Positions 4,791-57,370 of a stretch of 64,000 nt of DNA are shown here, piece after piece. Under the pieces are notes generated by a model. It saw only the letters and a program-made list of their open reading frames with translations. It was not told where the DNA came from and ran no database searches. Source of the stretch: Lytechinus pictus (lineage: Eukaryota); the NCBI RefSeq assembly GCF_037042905.1, contig NC_087261.1, positions 5,084,001 through 5,148,000 of the forward strand, read 5' to 3'. The translations under genes and the position numbers were made by a program. How positions within the stretch are numbered: position 1 is the stretch's first letter; every line of letters begins with the position of its first letter.

Positions 4791-5326
4791 AAGGGATAAA
4801 TAAGACAATTACACAGGAGGGATACTAAAAAGAGGAAGAAAAGTGAAGAATTTTAAAAGGGGAAGAGTTGGCAAATAGCAAACTTGTTTTTAACACTATA
4901 TCAAAATGCAAAATTCCGCTTCACGCTTGCATATCCTAGAACGTGAATGTTCAAACAGTTGTTCGCGCTTCTCACTTCTTTTAATGAAGCGTAATGAGCC
5001 AATATATATACAGTGCGTCCCAGAAAAAACGAAACCGAGATTTAGCGATGATTTATCATAACTTAATCATAAATAAAATAGACAAATGACCTACCAATGT
5101 AAAGCTTAGAATCTCCTCTTTCATCTGGTATTACTTAGATTATTCCTCATTGACGCATTATTGAGCAAAAAGATTTCGAAGAAAGGATGCCAAAAACTCA
5201 TTTGGCGGGGGGTATCTGAATTTCAAAAAGAAAATCACATGACTAAAAAGTTCAATATCTTCTTTTTTCTTTGATACCTAAATCACAGAAAATTGTCAAT
5301 GCTTGTATTTCCATAATTTCATTAAA

Positions 5327-5896
5327 AGGAGAATGAAACTCTTGGAGCAAGTTAGCTTTTGTGAAAGCAGAAAAATCAAAAAATAAGATCAACAAAAATT
5401 TGAGTAAAATAGGACTAGCAATAGAATAGTTATGAGCATTTGAATGTCGAGATCACTTATGCTATGGAGATCCTCCCATTGGCAATGCGACCAAGATCTA
5501 TGATGTCACAGGTGAAGAACTCTCCCCTTTTGGACACTGAAAATATACCCCAAAACATCTCTTTTTGCTCATTCTAATCATATGACAAACGATTCATCAA
5601 TGATTTAATGTTGTGAAACCTCTGTACTTCTCCTCTCATAAAGAGAACACCTCACATTGTGATAGACTCTATAAAAGTGAGAATATAAATGAAATAAAGG
5701 GAGTTGTACGTGTGTGACATCACAGATCTTGGTCGCATTGCCAATGGGAGGATCTACATGGCATTAGTGATCCGATCATTCAAATGATCATAACTTTCTT
5801 ATTATTCATTCAATCTTCCTCAAACTTTCAACAATATGTTTCTTTGATTTTTCTCTTTGATATAGATTCAGCTGGTTTCAAGGGTTTCATTCTTCT
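5327..5896. mobile_element. Kolobok-like MITE (TTAA TSD), family 1 copy a
   Basis: TTAA(A)|AGGAGAATGAAAC ... GTTTCATTCTTCT|TTAA; near-identical copy at 9318-9901. Confidence 0.8.
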
Positions 5897-5958
5897 TTAA
5901 ATAAACGTGTTTTCACTGGTTTCCCACAGAAGCTATCGCACGGTAACAAAAGACTTAA

Positions 5959-8571: not shown

Positions 8572-9317
8572 CCCTCTCCCTCGATCCTTCCCTCCCTCCC
8601 CGGTGCCCCCATCTCTCTCCCCCCCTTTTCTGTCTTTCTGGTCCATCGTCAGCTCCCCAACCACTTTCTCCAACACATAACACACATCTAATTCCCAACT
8701 CACAGTATAAACGATTTTTAAACACCCCTCCCCCTTTCACCATCTTTCTTCTTCACTGTAAAATACATTTTACAACTCTTGAACTTTAGGCCACATTATC
8801 TTACATGGTTGATCGAAACTAAAGTAATATTACTTAGGAATTTGAATGGTAAAAAAATCATTGCCATGTATGAATATGATATTTTTGTTCATTTATTTCA
8901 TTCACACAGTGAATATCAAATCTTCAGCACAACGAATTATTATGAACGACAAAATATAAATAGCATGTTTCAAACATAAGTAAAATGACATAATTATAAA
9001 GGCATTTAAACAATGAATATGTAAACAATTATTTTTGTAGAATGTGCAATGCAGCAATAGGCAATTCCCATCATCATCCTAGTATATTGATAATTATAAG
9101 AATTTGATGAAAATTAACCACTTTACTCCCTTGTTACTATGGTAACTCATACTGAAAATTAGAAGTATACTCTGAATTATTATAAATCAATCGCCTTTGG
9201 TGGTAAAGGAAGTACATTGTGAAATAGTACGAAGGGAATTCTTCTTAGCAATACTTATTATATGCCTTTATAACGTGTGCACTCACCAGGAGTAATAATC
9301 AAAATATTAAACATTAA

Positions 9318-9901
9318 AGGAGAATGAAACTCTTGGAGCAAGTTAGCTTTTGTGAAAGCAGAAAAATCAAAGAATAAGATCAACAAAACTTTGAGTAAAA
9401 TAGGACTAGCAATAAAAGAGTTATGAGCATTTGAATGTCGAGATCACTAATGCTATGGAGATCCCCCCATTGGCAATGCGACCAAGATCTGTGATGTCAC
9501 ACACGTACAACTCTCCCAATTGGACACTGAAAATATACCCCAAAACATCTCTTTTTGCTCATTCTAATCATAATGACAAACGATTCATCAATGATATAAT
9601 GTTGTGAAACCTCTGTACTTGTCATCTCATAAAGAGAACACCTCACCTTGTGATAGACTCTATAAAAGTGAGAATATAAGTGAAATAAGTACTAAAGTAA
9701 TAAGGGAGTTGTACGTGTGTGATATCACAGATCTTGGTCGCATTGCCGATGGGAGGATCAACATGGCACCAGTGATCTCAATATTCAAATGCTCATAACT
9801 TTCTTATTATTCATTCAATCTTCCTCAAACATTCAACAATATTTTTCTTTGATTTTTCTCTTTGATATGGATTCAGCTGGTTTCAAGGGTTTCATTCTCC
9901 T
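9318..9901. mobile_element. Kolobok-like MITE (TTAA TSD), family 1 copy b
   Basis: TTAA|AGGAGAATGAAAC ... GTTTCATTCTCCT|TTAA; aligns end to end with 5327-5896. Confidence 0.85.
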
Positions 9902-10485
9902 TTAACGAAAAAAGTACATAGCAAAAATCATTCATTAAAATATTGACATCCAGTGTCACGAATCTATATTAGAGCCCTGCTCTGTATATGACATAAAATA
10001 AGCCTACCAGAAAATGGACGGATTTGTCTGGAAAACATTTATCAATCGTAATACCCGAACTAGTTATCCCGGACGGAATTTGAACTGAATCATCTTCGTA
10101 TGATATTTAGGCCTGCGTCTTTAAGCAATCCCTCATAAAATAGTAATACGATAGAAATTCAAATTTACTTTTTCACGAGATGTGCTAAGCATGCCGTCAA
10201 TTTTTTTTTACCGTCAACCTATCGACATGATATTTCAATGTTCATGTATTGATAAGCACCAAATTGCCCTTGTCATGGACATTGTCCATTAAACTTTCAA
10301 TAAGTTATCTTTGACGAACTTATAGACGGGCATCATCTCATAACAGATGCATAAGGCCGTCGGGTTATATAGTAAACAAACCAATGGCACATAATTGGCA
10401 GCGTTTATGATATTGCGATATAACCCATAGATTCGGCCCGACTGCTCATGCATCACTAGGAGGTATCAATGAATACAGGTGATGT

Positions 10486-33298: not shown

Positions 33299-33715
33299 TA
33301 TGTGTAGCTGGCTCTACCAAGGACAGAGTCTTTGGAGTCTAGTCTTTATTCTAGTCCTGTTATTGGTTGAAGTGTCAAATATGAGTTTGTGCTTACACTG
33401 CTTGCAGACTAATATATTATTTTGCCAATGACTTATAAAAAGTTGCACGTCAACATGGCGAGATCCCAGAGATATTTATTATTTTGCCATAACATACATA
33501 TTTTTATAAGTCAACTTGCAAGTTGACTTATAAAAATATGTATGTTATTATCGCCATGTATGTTTAATATGATAGCGGTGTATATTATAAGCATAGAGCT
33601 ATAGCTCTATGTTATAAGGAAACTTTAAAGTGCGATCTATAATGGTTGAATGGCAAAATAATAATTATCTTTCCACAACAAATTTTGTTGTCACGTTGCA
33701 TTTAGCTTTCGTCCG

Positions 33716-41336: not shown

Positions 41337-43677
41337 CGCCAGTATTAATAAGAAAAAAGATAATTTACCAGACGGAGTATTGAGTGGGAGTGTGTGGTTT
41401 ATTTAACAACACGGCCAAGAGGCCGGATAAACGGATATCCGCGCGCTGTACAATGTAGCGACAATGCACATCAACATTCATAATAAACACCTTGGCGTGA
41501 CTCGAAAGTAACTATCCAACCAATGTAACAAAAACAACTCTACAAAATCTAACATAAAACAATTCTATGTAACACCTACTAAGCCATTAACATACCTAAA
41601 ATTGTGAAACATACCTCATTAGTTTTACTTTCTCTTTACAGCATAAAATATCAAATTGCCTTTCAACACTTAAATCATCTACAAACTGAAAACCAATAAA
41701 CTGTTTTTCAAGACACAAATCATTTCTACTTGCATATAATTTGCATAAAAGGGTCCCACTAAACTTCAGCAATCATCCAAAAATACACATTTCAAATCTT
41801 CATACCTAAGCAGCTTTAAAAGACACATATAAATCATTTGACATTCTATCTTTATCTCCTTAATATCCACTAAAAGATGGTGAATGGGGCAAGTCTGCTA
41901 AAATAATAAAACACAAAAATAAAATACCACAATGATACTCAAAAAAGATAAATGAAGCTATATGAAACTCCAATCAAAGTCTTATCCATGAAGAGCAAGA
42001 AACTTTCAAATGATAAAATTGTCTGCATACATTATAAATCCTGCCTATCAATTGACATACAAACATATTTACAAAAATGCACTGTTAAAGTCAAATACAA
42101 ACAATATCTCACAAGCAAAGGGGGATAAAATTTATATAATGCCTACACCAGATTGATGATAAAGCAACAATACCACATACATGACAGGTATGACGATAAA
42201 CAATTATTTAGTAAGAATGAGATGAGGATAATGATATGCATCAATAAACAAATGTCTATAGTAAGTAGGCCTAATCAAAACATTAAATGTGAGGTAAAAA
42301 GGCAATAACTAAACCATCGAGGACTACATTAAATTGTACCAATGATTACCTGTCAATAAACTATCAAAACACTACTCCATTATTAAACTGTATGGTGTAA
42401 GCAATATAAACAATACAATCAAACATGAGTTTTGCTACCTCTCACTTAACATCAGCTGTCATTTACAATTCAAATAATAAGTAGTAATCTCTTCATCACT
42501 CTACCTCCTCACTCTATCATCTTTTCACCCCACCTTCACTTCATGGAACACATAACAACCTGCATCATGCTACATACTTGCACCTTACCCTCTACCTCTT
42601 CACTCTATCTCTTCATCCAACCTTCACCTCATAAGAACACATAACCTGCATCATGGTACATTCTTGCACCTTACTCTCATTCATGAAACAACCATTTTCC
42701 AGTCATTCCAGTACAGTCAACTCTTCAAACATTAATACTCAGCACACTGTCTACCTCCAATGTAATAAACAAGTGAGCAAATATCAAATACACTGACTCA
42801 CACATCAACAATGAAAAAGTCACATCCTAAACCCAGCGATTATCCAAAACATGAATCAACAGTTAACTCTAATTTGTGTAAAATACACGTTAAAAAGAAA
42901 AAAAGAAATGAAAAAGTACATTGTATATAATCAAACACGATGAAGCCAGGTTGACAAAAAAAAAACACAACCTCAGGGTAAACAGCAGTTTAATCATGGA
43001 GCTATTAAGAGAGCTCTATGGTTTAATGTAGTACAACCTGAAAAATGTACATGCATACAGTCAACACATCTAACATGGAAGATCCAGTCCTAATAAGCAC
43101 AAATCATATGTGGGGTAGATGGGGGTCTAAAGGGATGACAATAGCAATATTAATGGGGCAGGGGAATGAAAGTCCAGGGCTTTTCGTACGAGAGGGGAAA
43201 ATTCTGGAGGGTGGTCATGGGCTGTGGTGAACAGGCAAGGCTGGATCGGGTAGTCATCATCCGCTGCTGGGATATCGGGGGTGATTACCTGACTGAAAGA
43301 TATGGGATGCCGTATGGGGACTGGAACCTGTGGGTTGGGAAAGATTGGGAATTATGGGCGGGCTACTGTCTTTGTGAGACAGGGGCAGAGGCACCTTACT
43401 AGAACATTCAGGGATGTCAGGATGGATGGGTGTGGGACTACTCAGCTGAGGAATGGCAAAGGCTCTGGTTTTAGTCACCAGTCATTTCGATGGCGTGGGT
43501 TCGTATCCCACCGCTGCCACCACGCCAGTATTAATAAGAAAAAAGATATTACCAGACGGAGTTTTGAGTGGGAGTGTGTGGTTTATTTAACAACACGGCC
43601 AAGAGGCCGGATAAACGGATATCCGCGCGCTGTACAATGTAGCGACAATAGTTGCACATCAACATTCATAATAAACA
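41337..43677 (-). mobile_element. Non-coding LTR-like retroelement with ~153-bp direct repeats and an extended tRNA-Leu primer site
   Basis: Direct repeats at 41337-41489 and 43523-43677 (1 substitution, 2 small indels). On the minus strand the repeat starts TGT, contains AATAAA and is immediately followed by TGGTGGCAGCGGTGGG (tRNA-Leu PBS). ACAT is duplicated at the junctions. Confidence 0.75.
43459..43522 (+). pseudogene. 5'-truncated retrocopy of mature tRNA-Leu(UAG), positions 21-76 including CCA
   Basis: AAGGCTCTGGTTTTAGTCACCAGTCATTTCGATGGCGTGGGTTCGTATCCCACCGCTGCCA-CCA: anticodon stem CTGGT/ACCAG, TAG anticodon, long variable arm, T arm, 3' acceptor strand, encoded CCA; 5' 20 nt missing. 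Confidence 0.9.
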
Positions 43678-46439
43678 TGGTATCCACTCGTCAATGTTAG
43701 TGACCCCCCGGGGTTTTAAAACACCGCATAGACTTGTGTGTTGTAAATTTGCATGGATGTGATATTAGATACATTTTTTTTTTAACTTTTATTTCTTAAG
43801 TGGTGTTTATTTTCTTCTAACTAACTAAAACTCTTTCTCAACACCACTCTTTTTCTTCTCTCTCTTTACCCCAATTATTCTCCCCTTCTCTATCGCTTCC
43901 TCCTTGTTCAATTAATTTTGCACACCACGTATACGTACTCTTATTCCGAAGATGTTAACAGACATAATGATCTGAGCGTTGTGCTCACTTTTTGGGCAGG
44001 GAAAGGAACCCTATGTAAAATAAGCTCAAATACATCGTAAAGATGAAGAAAAGTACTTTAAACAGTACAAGGTAATCAGCTGGCAAACCTTAACCCTATA
44101 TAACAGTCCCAGTGGACCTTAATGTCCCCCTCAATTCATAAACACGACAGGGCCACGCCATATTATCGTTCAAGAATATTTTTTTGGAAACATGCATGGT
44201 ATGCGGTTATGATATTACACAACAAGTGCATAATATGTCAGACCTCGAATTGCCTTGTGATTTCATGTATAAAGCCAATGTGAATTCTTGCTTAACTTTG
44301 TATCTGTATCATAAGTTGTCCTTTTTTTAATGATTGGAAAATTATAGCTAATAATTTTCATTAAAAAGCAATAAAAACAAGTAAAAAAACATCTGTTTGG
44401 TAGTGGATCGTATATTACCAAACACTTTTCATGAATTCAATCATATCAAACACATTATTCTCATAAAATTAACCAAACTTTCACCATAAATACACAATTA
44501 CCTACAAAATACATATATGTAAAAACTTTGCCGAATTCGTTTTCTTTTTTACGATATTAGCTTCCAATCAGACCCCTCTTCGCATGTGAAATATTTTGGT
44601 CACTTGAAAAGGGTATTGTATTATCGAACGTGTGTTTTCTATGGGAAAAGTTGAGAAAACAACACTAAAATCACTGATGAGCTATTTTGACCATATTTTA
44701 TTATTTTTAGTATATTAAGACTTTGAAAATGTGATTTGACCATTTTTCATCATCTTTCTATTCAAGTTCCCTTTGGAAGGATGTTGCAAAGTTCAAATAA
44801 TTTCATATATGCTCAAGTTGAGCATATATGAAATTATTTTCTGACGCGTACGATGCGCGTGTTCAATAATACAAGGCCGGTCGATTAATCACTCACTATA
44901 CATAAGAATTATTTAAAAAAAGGTAAAAAAAAAAATTGAAAACATTTTTTAATGATTTTTTTTTCTATTTAATCAGAATTCCTTGATTAAAAAAAAAGCA
45001 GTTCATAGGCTTTATTCATAGATTTAAACCCAAATTTGTATCTTTCTTTGACTAAAATTGGCATATATAGTTGATTAAAATGAAATAATGCATATTGTTT
45101 TACTGTACATAATGAAATTAAGCTTTGAAACCCCATAGTGCAAATTCCCCCCCCCCCCCTATATAGATTGACAAGACTCAAACTACCCTGGGACTACATA
45201 TATGTACATGTATGAGGAATGAATTTAATATAAAATTTCAGCTTACTTTAGTGGGTTTTTTTAGGCATTAAATTTCTATGATTAGTAACTTTTAATATTA
45301 ATTTTTCTGTTAGAAATTCAGTAAAAAAAATTGTAGTCATCTCTTACTTACTCCAAAAAAATGTATTCAAAACATCAAGAGCTTAAATAATATACTGTAT
45401 CAAGTGTATAGTTTAATTGATTTACAGACAATTACCCAGTACATCATTCATTGGAAAAAAAAGTTTTAAAATGATTTAAAACGTATTAAAACAATAAAAA
45501 AAAATTTTTTTTTAATAAAAACGTTTTTATTACAATATAGGGCCTAAGCGAAACTTTGAATTGTCATTACTTTCTCATTTTACATCTGATTTCGTGAAAA
45601 TTTAGTGATATGCTTGTTGGAGTTTTCTCTTTTAATTCAAATCAACTTTTTGTTATTGTGGGATGGGGGGGGGGGGGTTGAAGCCACGGAATGAAGAAGG
45701 CCTCTACTGAATAAAAAAAACGCCCCCATCCTTTCAGGATTGCCCGTATAGGATGCCATCCTCACAAACAATAATTAAATACAATTTGCTTCGAGAATAT
45801 GGTATAACCAATAGCTCCATGATCTAACTGAAGACAAACACTGTATTTTCACTGGTGTGCATATATGTTTGAACAACATTATATACAAGCTTATATTCTA
45901 ATTGTAATTTCATAACACATGTAATTGTTTATCATAATACTTCAAGTCATCTAAGTGTTTTCTAATGAATGTAGTCAATAATGATAATCACATGTTTTTC
46001 TGATGAGGCTTTACTATCTGATAATAACATTGTTTATTTAAATACATGAACATTTCATATTGAGTGGATATTATAATTGTACATGGAAACAAACACTCTC
46101 TATTATCAAGTTCTTTGTTTTAGTAAGTAATGCAACCAAACTTTATATTGCCATTTTAAACCGATTTTATTATTTTGTAAACCCCGGGTGTAGGCCTAAA
46201 CCCCGACTATAGTGAGAGTCGAACATAATGGAAACCAGTTTTCTTTTAATCAGCATCCTCAGGCCTCAGGCACTAGTCGGTGGTAATTTCTTCCTCTTCT
46301 ACATATTCTTGTTGTCTTTTGCCTGGAAATAAAATATATAAACAAAACAGAACAAAACGAACAAACGGTTCGTGCTTTCTTAGCAGTCGGGTAAAAAAAA
46401 ACCTCGGTATGTAAATAACCCGACTCTGCATGGGAAGCC

Positions 46440-55375: not shown

Positions 55376-57370
55376 CAGTGGCGTACCTAGGATTTTCCAC
55401 AGGGGGGGGGGGGGGCAAATTCGTCCGCCAAATAAAGTATTTCGTACCAGAAAAAAATTTGACAAGCAAAAAAAAAAAAAAAAAAGTCTTCAAGACTCGT
55501 CAGGGGGGGGGGGGCAGGGATATGTCCATGGGTGTCGATCGGTATTCTTGGTTGGGGGGGATGATTGACACAAAAGTTCTTGTGGATGGGGATCTTTCAA
55601 CATTACCCCCACTAAAATCACAAGTTAGGACATTTTGGAGTAATTTATATGCATGGTGTTCTTGGAAATTCCTTCATTGTTGTAGTGTACTGTACTTATA
55701 TAATTTCTTTTTGAAAATTCAATTTGTGTTACAAGTAAGCCTATTCTAAACTCATACGAAAGAAAAAATGACAAAAATTGTCTGGACCATGTGCATAGTG
55801 ATCTGTTTATTGAGCATGATGTATACACAGGGGCGTCGATCCATTTCTCAGATTGGGGGGGGGGGGGGGGCAAAATCATGAATCAACGTTCCAAAGGCGC
55901 TCGATCATACAAAACGAACAAACTCACCCACACACCCCTACACCCCCACCCTCACCAACAATGCGAGCGCAAAGCGCGAGCTGAAATTTTTTAGTATGAC
56001 ATGAAAACAGGAAAAATGTACCTGTGTAGGTTTGTTTGTAGTAACTCATGAGGAGCATAAATACATGTATCTCACTAGAGAGCGAGCTAAAATTTCTTTA
56101 TATTCTGACGTGAAAGCTTGATATTCTAAGCATTTTTGGTACCAATGATTAAGATGGGTATAATAGATGCGAGCGCAAAGCGCCAGCTGAAAATTTTGAT
56201 ATTTCGATCTGGAAAAAAAGACAGTTTAATGGACGCTTTTAATAAAGAACAAGATATATACCCAACAAAAAATTATTGCAAATCGAAGCGGGAGTTCTTT
56301 TGAAGTATAGAACTGAAAACGGGACACTCTATTCACCTATTTAATTATGAAAAGTATGGGGTTTTGGTACAGAAATGATGCGAGCGCGAAGCGCGAGCTG
56401 AAAATTTTTATATTCCAATCTGAAAAGCAGACATTCTGAGTACGATTTTCAATCAAAATCGAGTTGGAATCTCAATCTCGCTTGCTGCTGGTTTCAGTGT
56501 AGCATTACAATCTTATTTTTTAGTTGCACATGCGGAATTATTGGGAGGGGGCAAAACGATATGTTCCCCCCAAATATTTTCATTGGTGGGGTGATCGCCC
56601 CCCCCCCCCCCAATCGAAGCCTCTGTGTATACAACTTCTCTCTTAAATCTAACCCGACTGGCAATATCTTTTTTCTTAATGCATGATGATAACATGCAGA
56701 TTCGGACCAATAATTTTATTAAGACTAGCACAAATGACAAACTGTGTGGCTTCTCGTGCGCCATCGGGCTTACCGTCATTCCATAGAGCTATTACTGTAT
56801 GTAATAGCTGTATGGTCATTCCTTAGACGATTTATCTTGCCACCCTTTTACTCCCGTTTATTGTCCACCCTTTTGAATTAATAATTGATGTATTAAAATC
56901 AATTTATTCACCACTGGTGGGATGGAACACCCTATCCACAAAAGTTGTTTTTCGTTGGGGTCCTTTTATGTCATGTGTTAAAAATATCATATACAAAAAC
57001 ATTTCACTCTTTTTCATCTTGAACCTCCATTCATCTATTTAATAGTCCTGAAAAAGAATGTTTTTATTTAATAACAATATACACAAATTGCGAAGAAAAC
57101 AAACTGATTGATGGCATAATCATCACTATAATCATCATGATCAAACTTTTCATTTTTTCATCATCATTATTATAATTTTTCTACCCTAAATTATTGGGGG
57201 GGGGGGGATGATAATACAGGCCATCCCCCCCACTTGAAATATTGGGGGGGATATATCCCCCCCATCCCCCCCGTGATCGACACCCATGGATATGTCCATT
57301 GCATGGGTTGTGACTCGTCGCGGGGGGGGGGGGGGGCAGTCTGCCCCCCCCGTATATAGGTACGCTAGTG
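55376..57370. mobile_element. Triple-nested hAT-like MITEs
   Basis: Outer 55376-57370 (TSD CTGGGCAG/CTAGGCAG), middle 55527-57288 (TSD GATATGTC), inner 55828-56625 (TSD TGTATACA); all have CA..TG ends. Confidence 0.85.

Follow-up and report, generated by a model that had tools for sequence, protein, structure and literature searches.

Introduction

The P transposase of Drosophila cuts the 3′ strand at the tip of its element but the 5′ strand 17 nt further in, within the TIR, thereby producing 17-nt 3′ overhangs, and this 17-nt stagger has been called an unusual feature that distinguishes the enzyme (PMC7776569; PMC10983969). The junctions recovered after excision of P{wa} retain a TSD on each side and, inside it, as many as 17 nt of the respective TIR, with or without an insert in the middle (Chan, Yu and McVey 2010, PMC2895639). 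A few joins at 2-nt microhomologies were recovered repeatedly as independent events, one AT join making up 14 of 68 isolates, and other junctions were blunt or contained inserts, either of 1-3 nt or templated and up to ~49 nt long (PMC2895639). Within the literature searched, the Drosophila P element is the only one for which a long staggered cut of the P type has been mapped. Two other families of the P superfamily, 1360 and Galileo, make 7-bp TSDs (PMC3698922), and those of Galileo, with the consensus GTANTAC, lie within a target motif that is palindromic (PMC4168063).

Here we analyse a stretch of 64 kb from the genome of the sea urchin Lytechinus pictus, hereafter the window (contig C17:5,084,001-5,148,000 of an 812-Mb assembly), in which three short inserts are best read, with a probability of about 0.85, as donor-site excision scars of non-autonomous cut-and-paste DNA transposons. 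Like the P{wa} junctions, these scars keep both TSD copies together with up to 17 nt of TIR and fall into the same junction classes. However, the fly TSD is 8 bp and that of the sea urchin 7 bp; the fly junctions come from excisions provoked experimentally and read in the next generation, whereas the sea-urchin scars are natural, inherited and more than 1,000 in number; and full 17-nt arms, common in the fly, are rare here, where the usual maximum is 16 nt. By eye, 10 of the first 17 nt also match the TIR of the Drosophila P element as given in PMC2895639, which is suggestive only and is not counted as evidence.

Galileo and 1360 (Hoppel) share the 7-bp TSD with the sea-urchin family, and Galileo additionally has a palindromic target (GTANTAC against GTnnnAC here), a likeness at the level of the DNA; unlike the present family, they live in insect hosts (Drosophila) rather than in an echinoderm, and Galileo has very long foldback-like TIRs where the TIR here is 25 nt. 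Heritable donor-site scars of past cut-and-paste traffic are also left by Tc1/mariner elements (TACATGTA in the Lytechinus pictus genome), but those retain 2-3 nt per end at a TA target, whereas the P-like scars retain 9-17 nt per end within a 7-bp TSD, a sign of a far longer stagger between the cuts. No publication on genome-wide P-type scars or on this element family was found within the literature searched.

Results

All three inserts start with CAT[A/G]GAGCTAT, end with its reverse complement and are flanked by perfect 7-bp direct repeats (Table 1), so that each of the sites, at 33585, 42995 and 56782, reads just as the original prediction had described it, namely as a palindrome or insert with a 7-bp TSD. 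The junction of the first scar belongs to the class that is commonest in the genome, the 17-nt left arm of the second is the exact right end of a longer subfamily (subfamily B, below), and the filler of the third copies the start of the neighbouring arm. The 9-mer alone, with at most one mismatch, has 15 matches in the window against 9.4 expected, that is, no enrichment; it is the paired, TSD-flanked architecture, and not the 9-mer alone, that carries the significance.

Table 1. Positions of the three scars and of their flanking TSDs in the window
Feature	Position	Description
Site 1, left TSD	33585..33591	TTATAAG
Scar 1	33592..33611	20 bp, perfect palindrome; two 11-nt TIR arms (CATAGAGCTAT) that share a 2-nt AT microhomology at the join
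Site 1, right TSD	33612..33618	TTATAAG
Site 2, left TSD	42988..42994	GTTTAAT
Scar 2	42995..43020	26 bp; 17-nt arm CATGGAGCTATTAAGAG and 9-nt arm, blunt join
Site 2, right TSD	43021..43027	GTTTAAT
Site 3, left TSD	56775..56781	GTCATTC
Scar 3	56782..56814	33 bp; 14-nt arm, 4-nt filler TGTA and 15-nt arm with one substitution
Site 3, right TSD	56815..56821	GTCATTC

In a check for paralogous empty sites, site 1 and its flanks proved to be single-copy, with a repeat beginning ~90 bp downstream, and no second copy of site 2 was present among the sequences examined. Site 3, with ~1.8 kb of flank (window 55504-57288), is duplicated on contig C1 (21.53 Mb, L019:234-1996) at 96.5% identity, and since the duplicate carries the identical scar, this scar predates the duplication. 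For site 1, contigs of public runs gave, among the matches listed, no allele with the element or the scar, none missing the 27 bp and no loose end, and none of them spans the repeat-flanked site; no site was seen with the element on one allele and the scar on the other, the read layout at site 1 being uninformative. The genome average predicts ~0.1-0.2 scars per 64-kb window; the three in this one exceed it, but are not remarkable given the number of windows surveyed.

Two further features of the window lie near or resemble the scars. Positions 33489-33548, 37 bp upstream of scar 1, form a perfect 60-bp palindrome (centre TTGCAA) that includes TTATAAG, the TSD heptamer of scar 1, and its complement, and that shows no obvious TSD of its own. 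At 45810-45821 there is a solitary 12-nt right terminus (AATAGCTCCATG) with no left arm to match; it may be either a truncated end or a scar with a single arm.

Longer elements with the same TIRs, as had been predicted, are present in the genome at ~1 kb and ~2.35 kb with 7-bp TSDs, and in both sizes they are non-coding. The shorter ones measure 955-1,289 bp and were found at seven independent sites, each with a different, perfect 7-bp TSD; they carry a 25-nt TIR (CATAGAGCTATTACAGAAGGAGGAC), of which the scar arms are truncated copies. BLAST with one ~1-kb copy returned at least 497 candidate places in the genome, and full-length copies among the matches listed are 84-94% identical to the query copy. 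A second subfamily (B), ~2.35 kb in length, has the same kind of termini, its ends being CATAGAGCTATTAACAG... and CATGGAGCTATTAAGAG..., the latter giving rise to the long arm of scar 2. Although the reading of the inserts as excision footprints of P-like elements stands, the single family that was originally proposed is replaced by several related subfamilies, site 2 carrying a subfamily B end.

Across 110 distinct termini, the target heptamer has the frequencies G.49, T.78, three free positions, A.78 and C.50, that is, the palindrome GTnnnAC. A 16-nt sub-terminal inverted repeat is also conserved in the ~1-kb element, at distances of ~50-60 bp and ~185 bp from its two ends, and the combination of a 25-nt TIR with an unequally spaced sub-terminal repeat would be a P-like layout, one that recalls P and Pdre2. 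Zebrafish Pdre2/THAP9 is likewise a P-like system of a deuterostome with short TIRs, sub-terminal inverted repeats and ~1-kb non-autonomous copies (PMC10983969); however, Pdre2 has 13-bp TIRs and 8-bp TSDs, and zebrafish THAP9 excision in cell assays leaves larger flanking deletions instead of neat scars that retain TIR sequence (PMC10983969). Another comparable element is BuT5, a MITE of the Drosophila repleta group mobilised by a divergent P element (PMC3698922), which is also ~1 kb long and non-coding, has short TIRs and sub-terminal inverted repeats, and far outnumbers any autonomous partner (PMC3698922), but which makes 8-9-bp TSDs and has a cloned master P element (PMC3698922), whereas here the TSD is 7 bp and no master was found.

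The anatomy of the scars was scored on 38 distinct examples in the DNA examined, 33 of which, with good TSDs, were used for arms and junctions. The TSD is perfect (7/7) in 26 of the 38 and has one mismatch in 7 more. Arms are typically 9-16 nt long, 9 nt being the minimum of the search pattern; only 4 of the 66 reach 17-19 nt (one of 17, two of 18 and one of 19) and none exceeds 19. The cut would thus lie about 16-17 nt inside the TIR, with 19 nt as the upper bound; since 17-nt arms are rarer than 16-nt arms, the data leave a choice between 16, 17 and up to 19 nt for the exact position.

Based on these features, we propose the following course of events. First, an element whose 25-nt TIRs read CATAGAGCTATTACAGAAGGAGGAC or a close variant of it inserts at a GTnnnAC-like target and duplicates 7 bp. 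On excision, the transposase would cut one strand at the tip of the element and the other ~16-17 nt inside the TIR, and TIR sequence would thus remain on each flank as a long 3′ overhang. The overhangs would then be united by end joining, through 1-3-nt microhomology, bluntly, or with templated filler made by a polymerase. What is seen in the scars are both TSD copies, with 9-17 nt left from either TIR.

A transposase of the P superfamily is suggested by three features taken together, the long stagger, the duplication of 7 bp and the palindromic target like that of Galileo, and the elements are likely to belong to this superfamily. Members of the superfamily have TSDs of 7 or 8 bp, and here 7 bp are found at the seven full elements and at most scars; the palindromic GT...AC motif is centred on the TSD; and the 17-nt staggered cut has its counterpart in the length of the scar arms and in the drop-off beyond 34 bp described below. 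The assignment draws on these three features, no transposase with these TIRs having been found. In particular, the full-length element encoding a THAP/P transposase that had been anticipated did not turn up: no transposase is present in any readable element copy with these TIRs, and no P-transposase match is in the vicinity of any of the 89 exact long termini listed genome-wide.

P-type transposases are nevertheless encoded in the genome, with HTH, RNase H and GTP-binding insertion domains, and the P-element HTH domain has eight genome matches. They include an 817-aa open frame with PF12017, PF21787, PF21788 and PF21789 at C12:261277-263331 (L066:1192-3246) and two 959-aa frames with nearly identical scores at C21:9248086 and C4:26170307; such long-frame genes could belong to transposons that are still active, or could have been domesticated like THAP9. 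At the eight transposase loci examined, there is no CAT[A/G]GAGCT terminus and no sequence in common with the element family. The autonomous partner may have been lost, may have diverged ends, or may be a P-type gene acting in trans.

To our knowledge, the cut geometry of several eukaryotic superfamilies is still unknown, and this, along with the failure to link a P-type transposase to these TIRs, leaves some room for a transposon outside the P superfamily that would combine a long stagger with 7-bp duplications and leave true excision footprints as well. We consider such a source unlikely, as the combination of a 7-bp TSD, a GTnnnAC target and a ~17-nt stagger is described only for the P superfamily in the literature searched, and the genome does have P-type transposase genes, some with long open frames.

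Three long candidates were examined as possible autonomous copies and rejected. L031 (3,715 bp) and the inner element of L054 (4,348 bp) both belong to the family and contain nested repeats; neither has a Pfam domain or a tblastn match to P transposases. L032 is not a true pair, as its flanks differ. Both long P-like copies carry, nested within them (L031:3582-4172 and L054:3220-3810), a ~590-bp foldback-like repeat that also occurs twice in the window, at 5317-5901 and 9313-9906, the copies being 92-98% identical. At L054:1025-6417, a 4.3-kb subfamily B element is inserted in the right TIR of a 1-kb element at the target GTAATAG, and therefore the TIR itself includes a preferred target heptamer.

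Among the junctions of the 33 scars, a sample biased to long scars by ten loci drawn from the 35-65-bp search, 15 have a microhomology of 1-3 nt and 1 a microhomology of at least 4 nt, while 5 have inserts of 1-3 nt and 12 have inserts of at least 4 nt, often templated. In an unselected sample of 50 sites, the 20-mer of site 1 recurs at 11 of them and a 23-mer at 13. This recurrence, and the fact that every copy has its own TSD, are also what transposition would give, and they could be taken to mean that the inserts are micro-MITEs of 18-34 bp which transpose by themselves with a fresh 7-bp duplication each time.

That reading is very improbable on several counts. The other half of the sample consists of ~20 different sequences with variable arms and filler, and the inserts of 18-34 bp as a whole come in many lengths, arms and fillers, not in the one length and sequence that a MITE inherits from a master copy; their variation in length and sequence agrees with what was originally predicted. 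Both recurrent forms, moreover, are joins expected at 2-nt microhomologies, the 20-mer being two 11-nt arms overlapped at AT and the 23-mer a 16-nt and a 9-nt arm overlapped at AG, and laboratory P excisions repeat a few joins independently in the same manner, as in the AT join cited above (PMC2895639). Since independent repair repeats few joins, the recurrence of the 20-mer and the 23-mer needs no mobile micro-element. Additionally, the arms end at ~17 nt as if from a cut site, which amplification of a master copy would not give, and the remnants lack internal transposase-binding sites of the kind that Drosophila P has beside its TIRs (PMC7776569), on which this family would presumably depend as well.

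At the genome-wide level, the paired architecture is far above chance. The R/Y pattern of the original prediction, CATRGAGCT-N0-16-AGCTCYATG, has 1,239 sites with inserts of 18-34 bp, and the same ends spaced for inserts of 35-65 bp have 78, with none in either control; a cap near 2 x 17 bp had been foreseen and is borne out by these counts. The more restricted A-type ends, CATAGAGCT-N0-30-AGCTCTATG, are found at 237 sites with inserts of 18-48 bp (231 at 18-34 bp and 6 above 34 bp), and CATAGAGCT...AGCTCTATG at 10 sites with inserts of 35-65 bp and 4 of 66-96 bp, all with zero in the control. The 14-mer CATAGAGCTATTAC has 391 genome matches, against 2 for the reversed control. Shorter inserts of 14-17 bp (CATAGAG-N0-3-CTCTATG) occur at 40 sites (control 8), ~31 of them the exact 14-bp palindrome CATAGAGCTCTATG, which is expected as the AGCT-junction scar, that is, the join at the self-complementary AGCT of the TIR.

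The size distribution is therefore sharply two-peaked, the inserts being either at most 34 bp long or full elements. Extreme internal deletions, arising by aborted template-directed gap repair or replication slippage and not by direct end joining, have a precedent in flies, where incomplete synthesis followed by end joining is the commonest wild-type outcome after P excision (PMC2895639) and internally deleted P elements of 0.5-2.8 kb are known (PMC7776569), but they hardly come into consideration here, because they predict a broad range of retained lengths, whereas the counts fall from 1,239 (18-34 bp) to 78 (35-65 bp) and, for the A-type, 4 (66-96 bp) before the 1-kb elements follow, and no arm is longer than 19 nt.

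With more than 1,200 excision scars, the genome-wide total lies in the low thousands, where extrapolation from three sites in 64 kb would have given tens of thousands; because site 3 was duplicated together with its scar, the counts include a few non-independent sites. Intact ends are far fewer, with only 89 exact 21-22-nt termini in the whole genome, so that scars outnumber intact termini by more than 10:1 (1,239 against 89, at differing stringencies).

Discussion

Because the scars outnumber the intact termini by so much, repeat annotation would overlook most of the past activity of this transposon. Insertions of 25-41 bp, made up of a scar and the extra TSD copy, could moreover be misread as variation of another origin. 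For a deuterostome, the scars supply evidence of a P-type cut geometry at the level of the sequence, and they also record germline end joining, with its microhomologies and templated inserts, in an animal where this is otherwise hard to measure.

A bolder view, possible though rather doubtful, is that the scars amount to a catalogue of more than 1,000 independent germline repairs, that the ~17-nt cut has been conserved from insects to echinoderms, and that an intact gene of the 817-aa or 959-aa kind may still mobilise the elements. If a P-type gene were still doing so, living animals would be polymorphic for both the scars and the elements.

Two observations concern the arrangement of the copies. 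First, the longer sites are often two or three tandem scars with one common TSD, or contain repeated templated filler. Tandem scars in two or three copies are seen at L063:1501-1549 (C19:6695888-6695936), C9:23002030-23002084 and C3:76508262-76508359, set apart by an identical 7-bp TSD such as GTCAGAC, which suggests either several rounds of insertion and excision at a single preferred target or a short stretch duplicated in tandem. Second, contig C3, with ~10% of the genome, holds 35 of the 89 intact long termini, and this roughly four-fold enrichment would fit local hopping.
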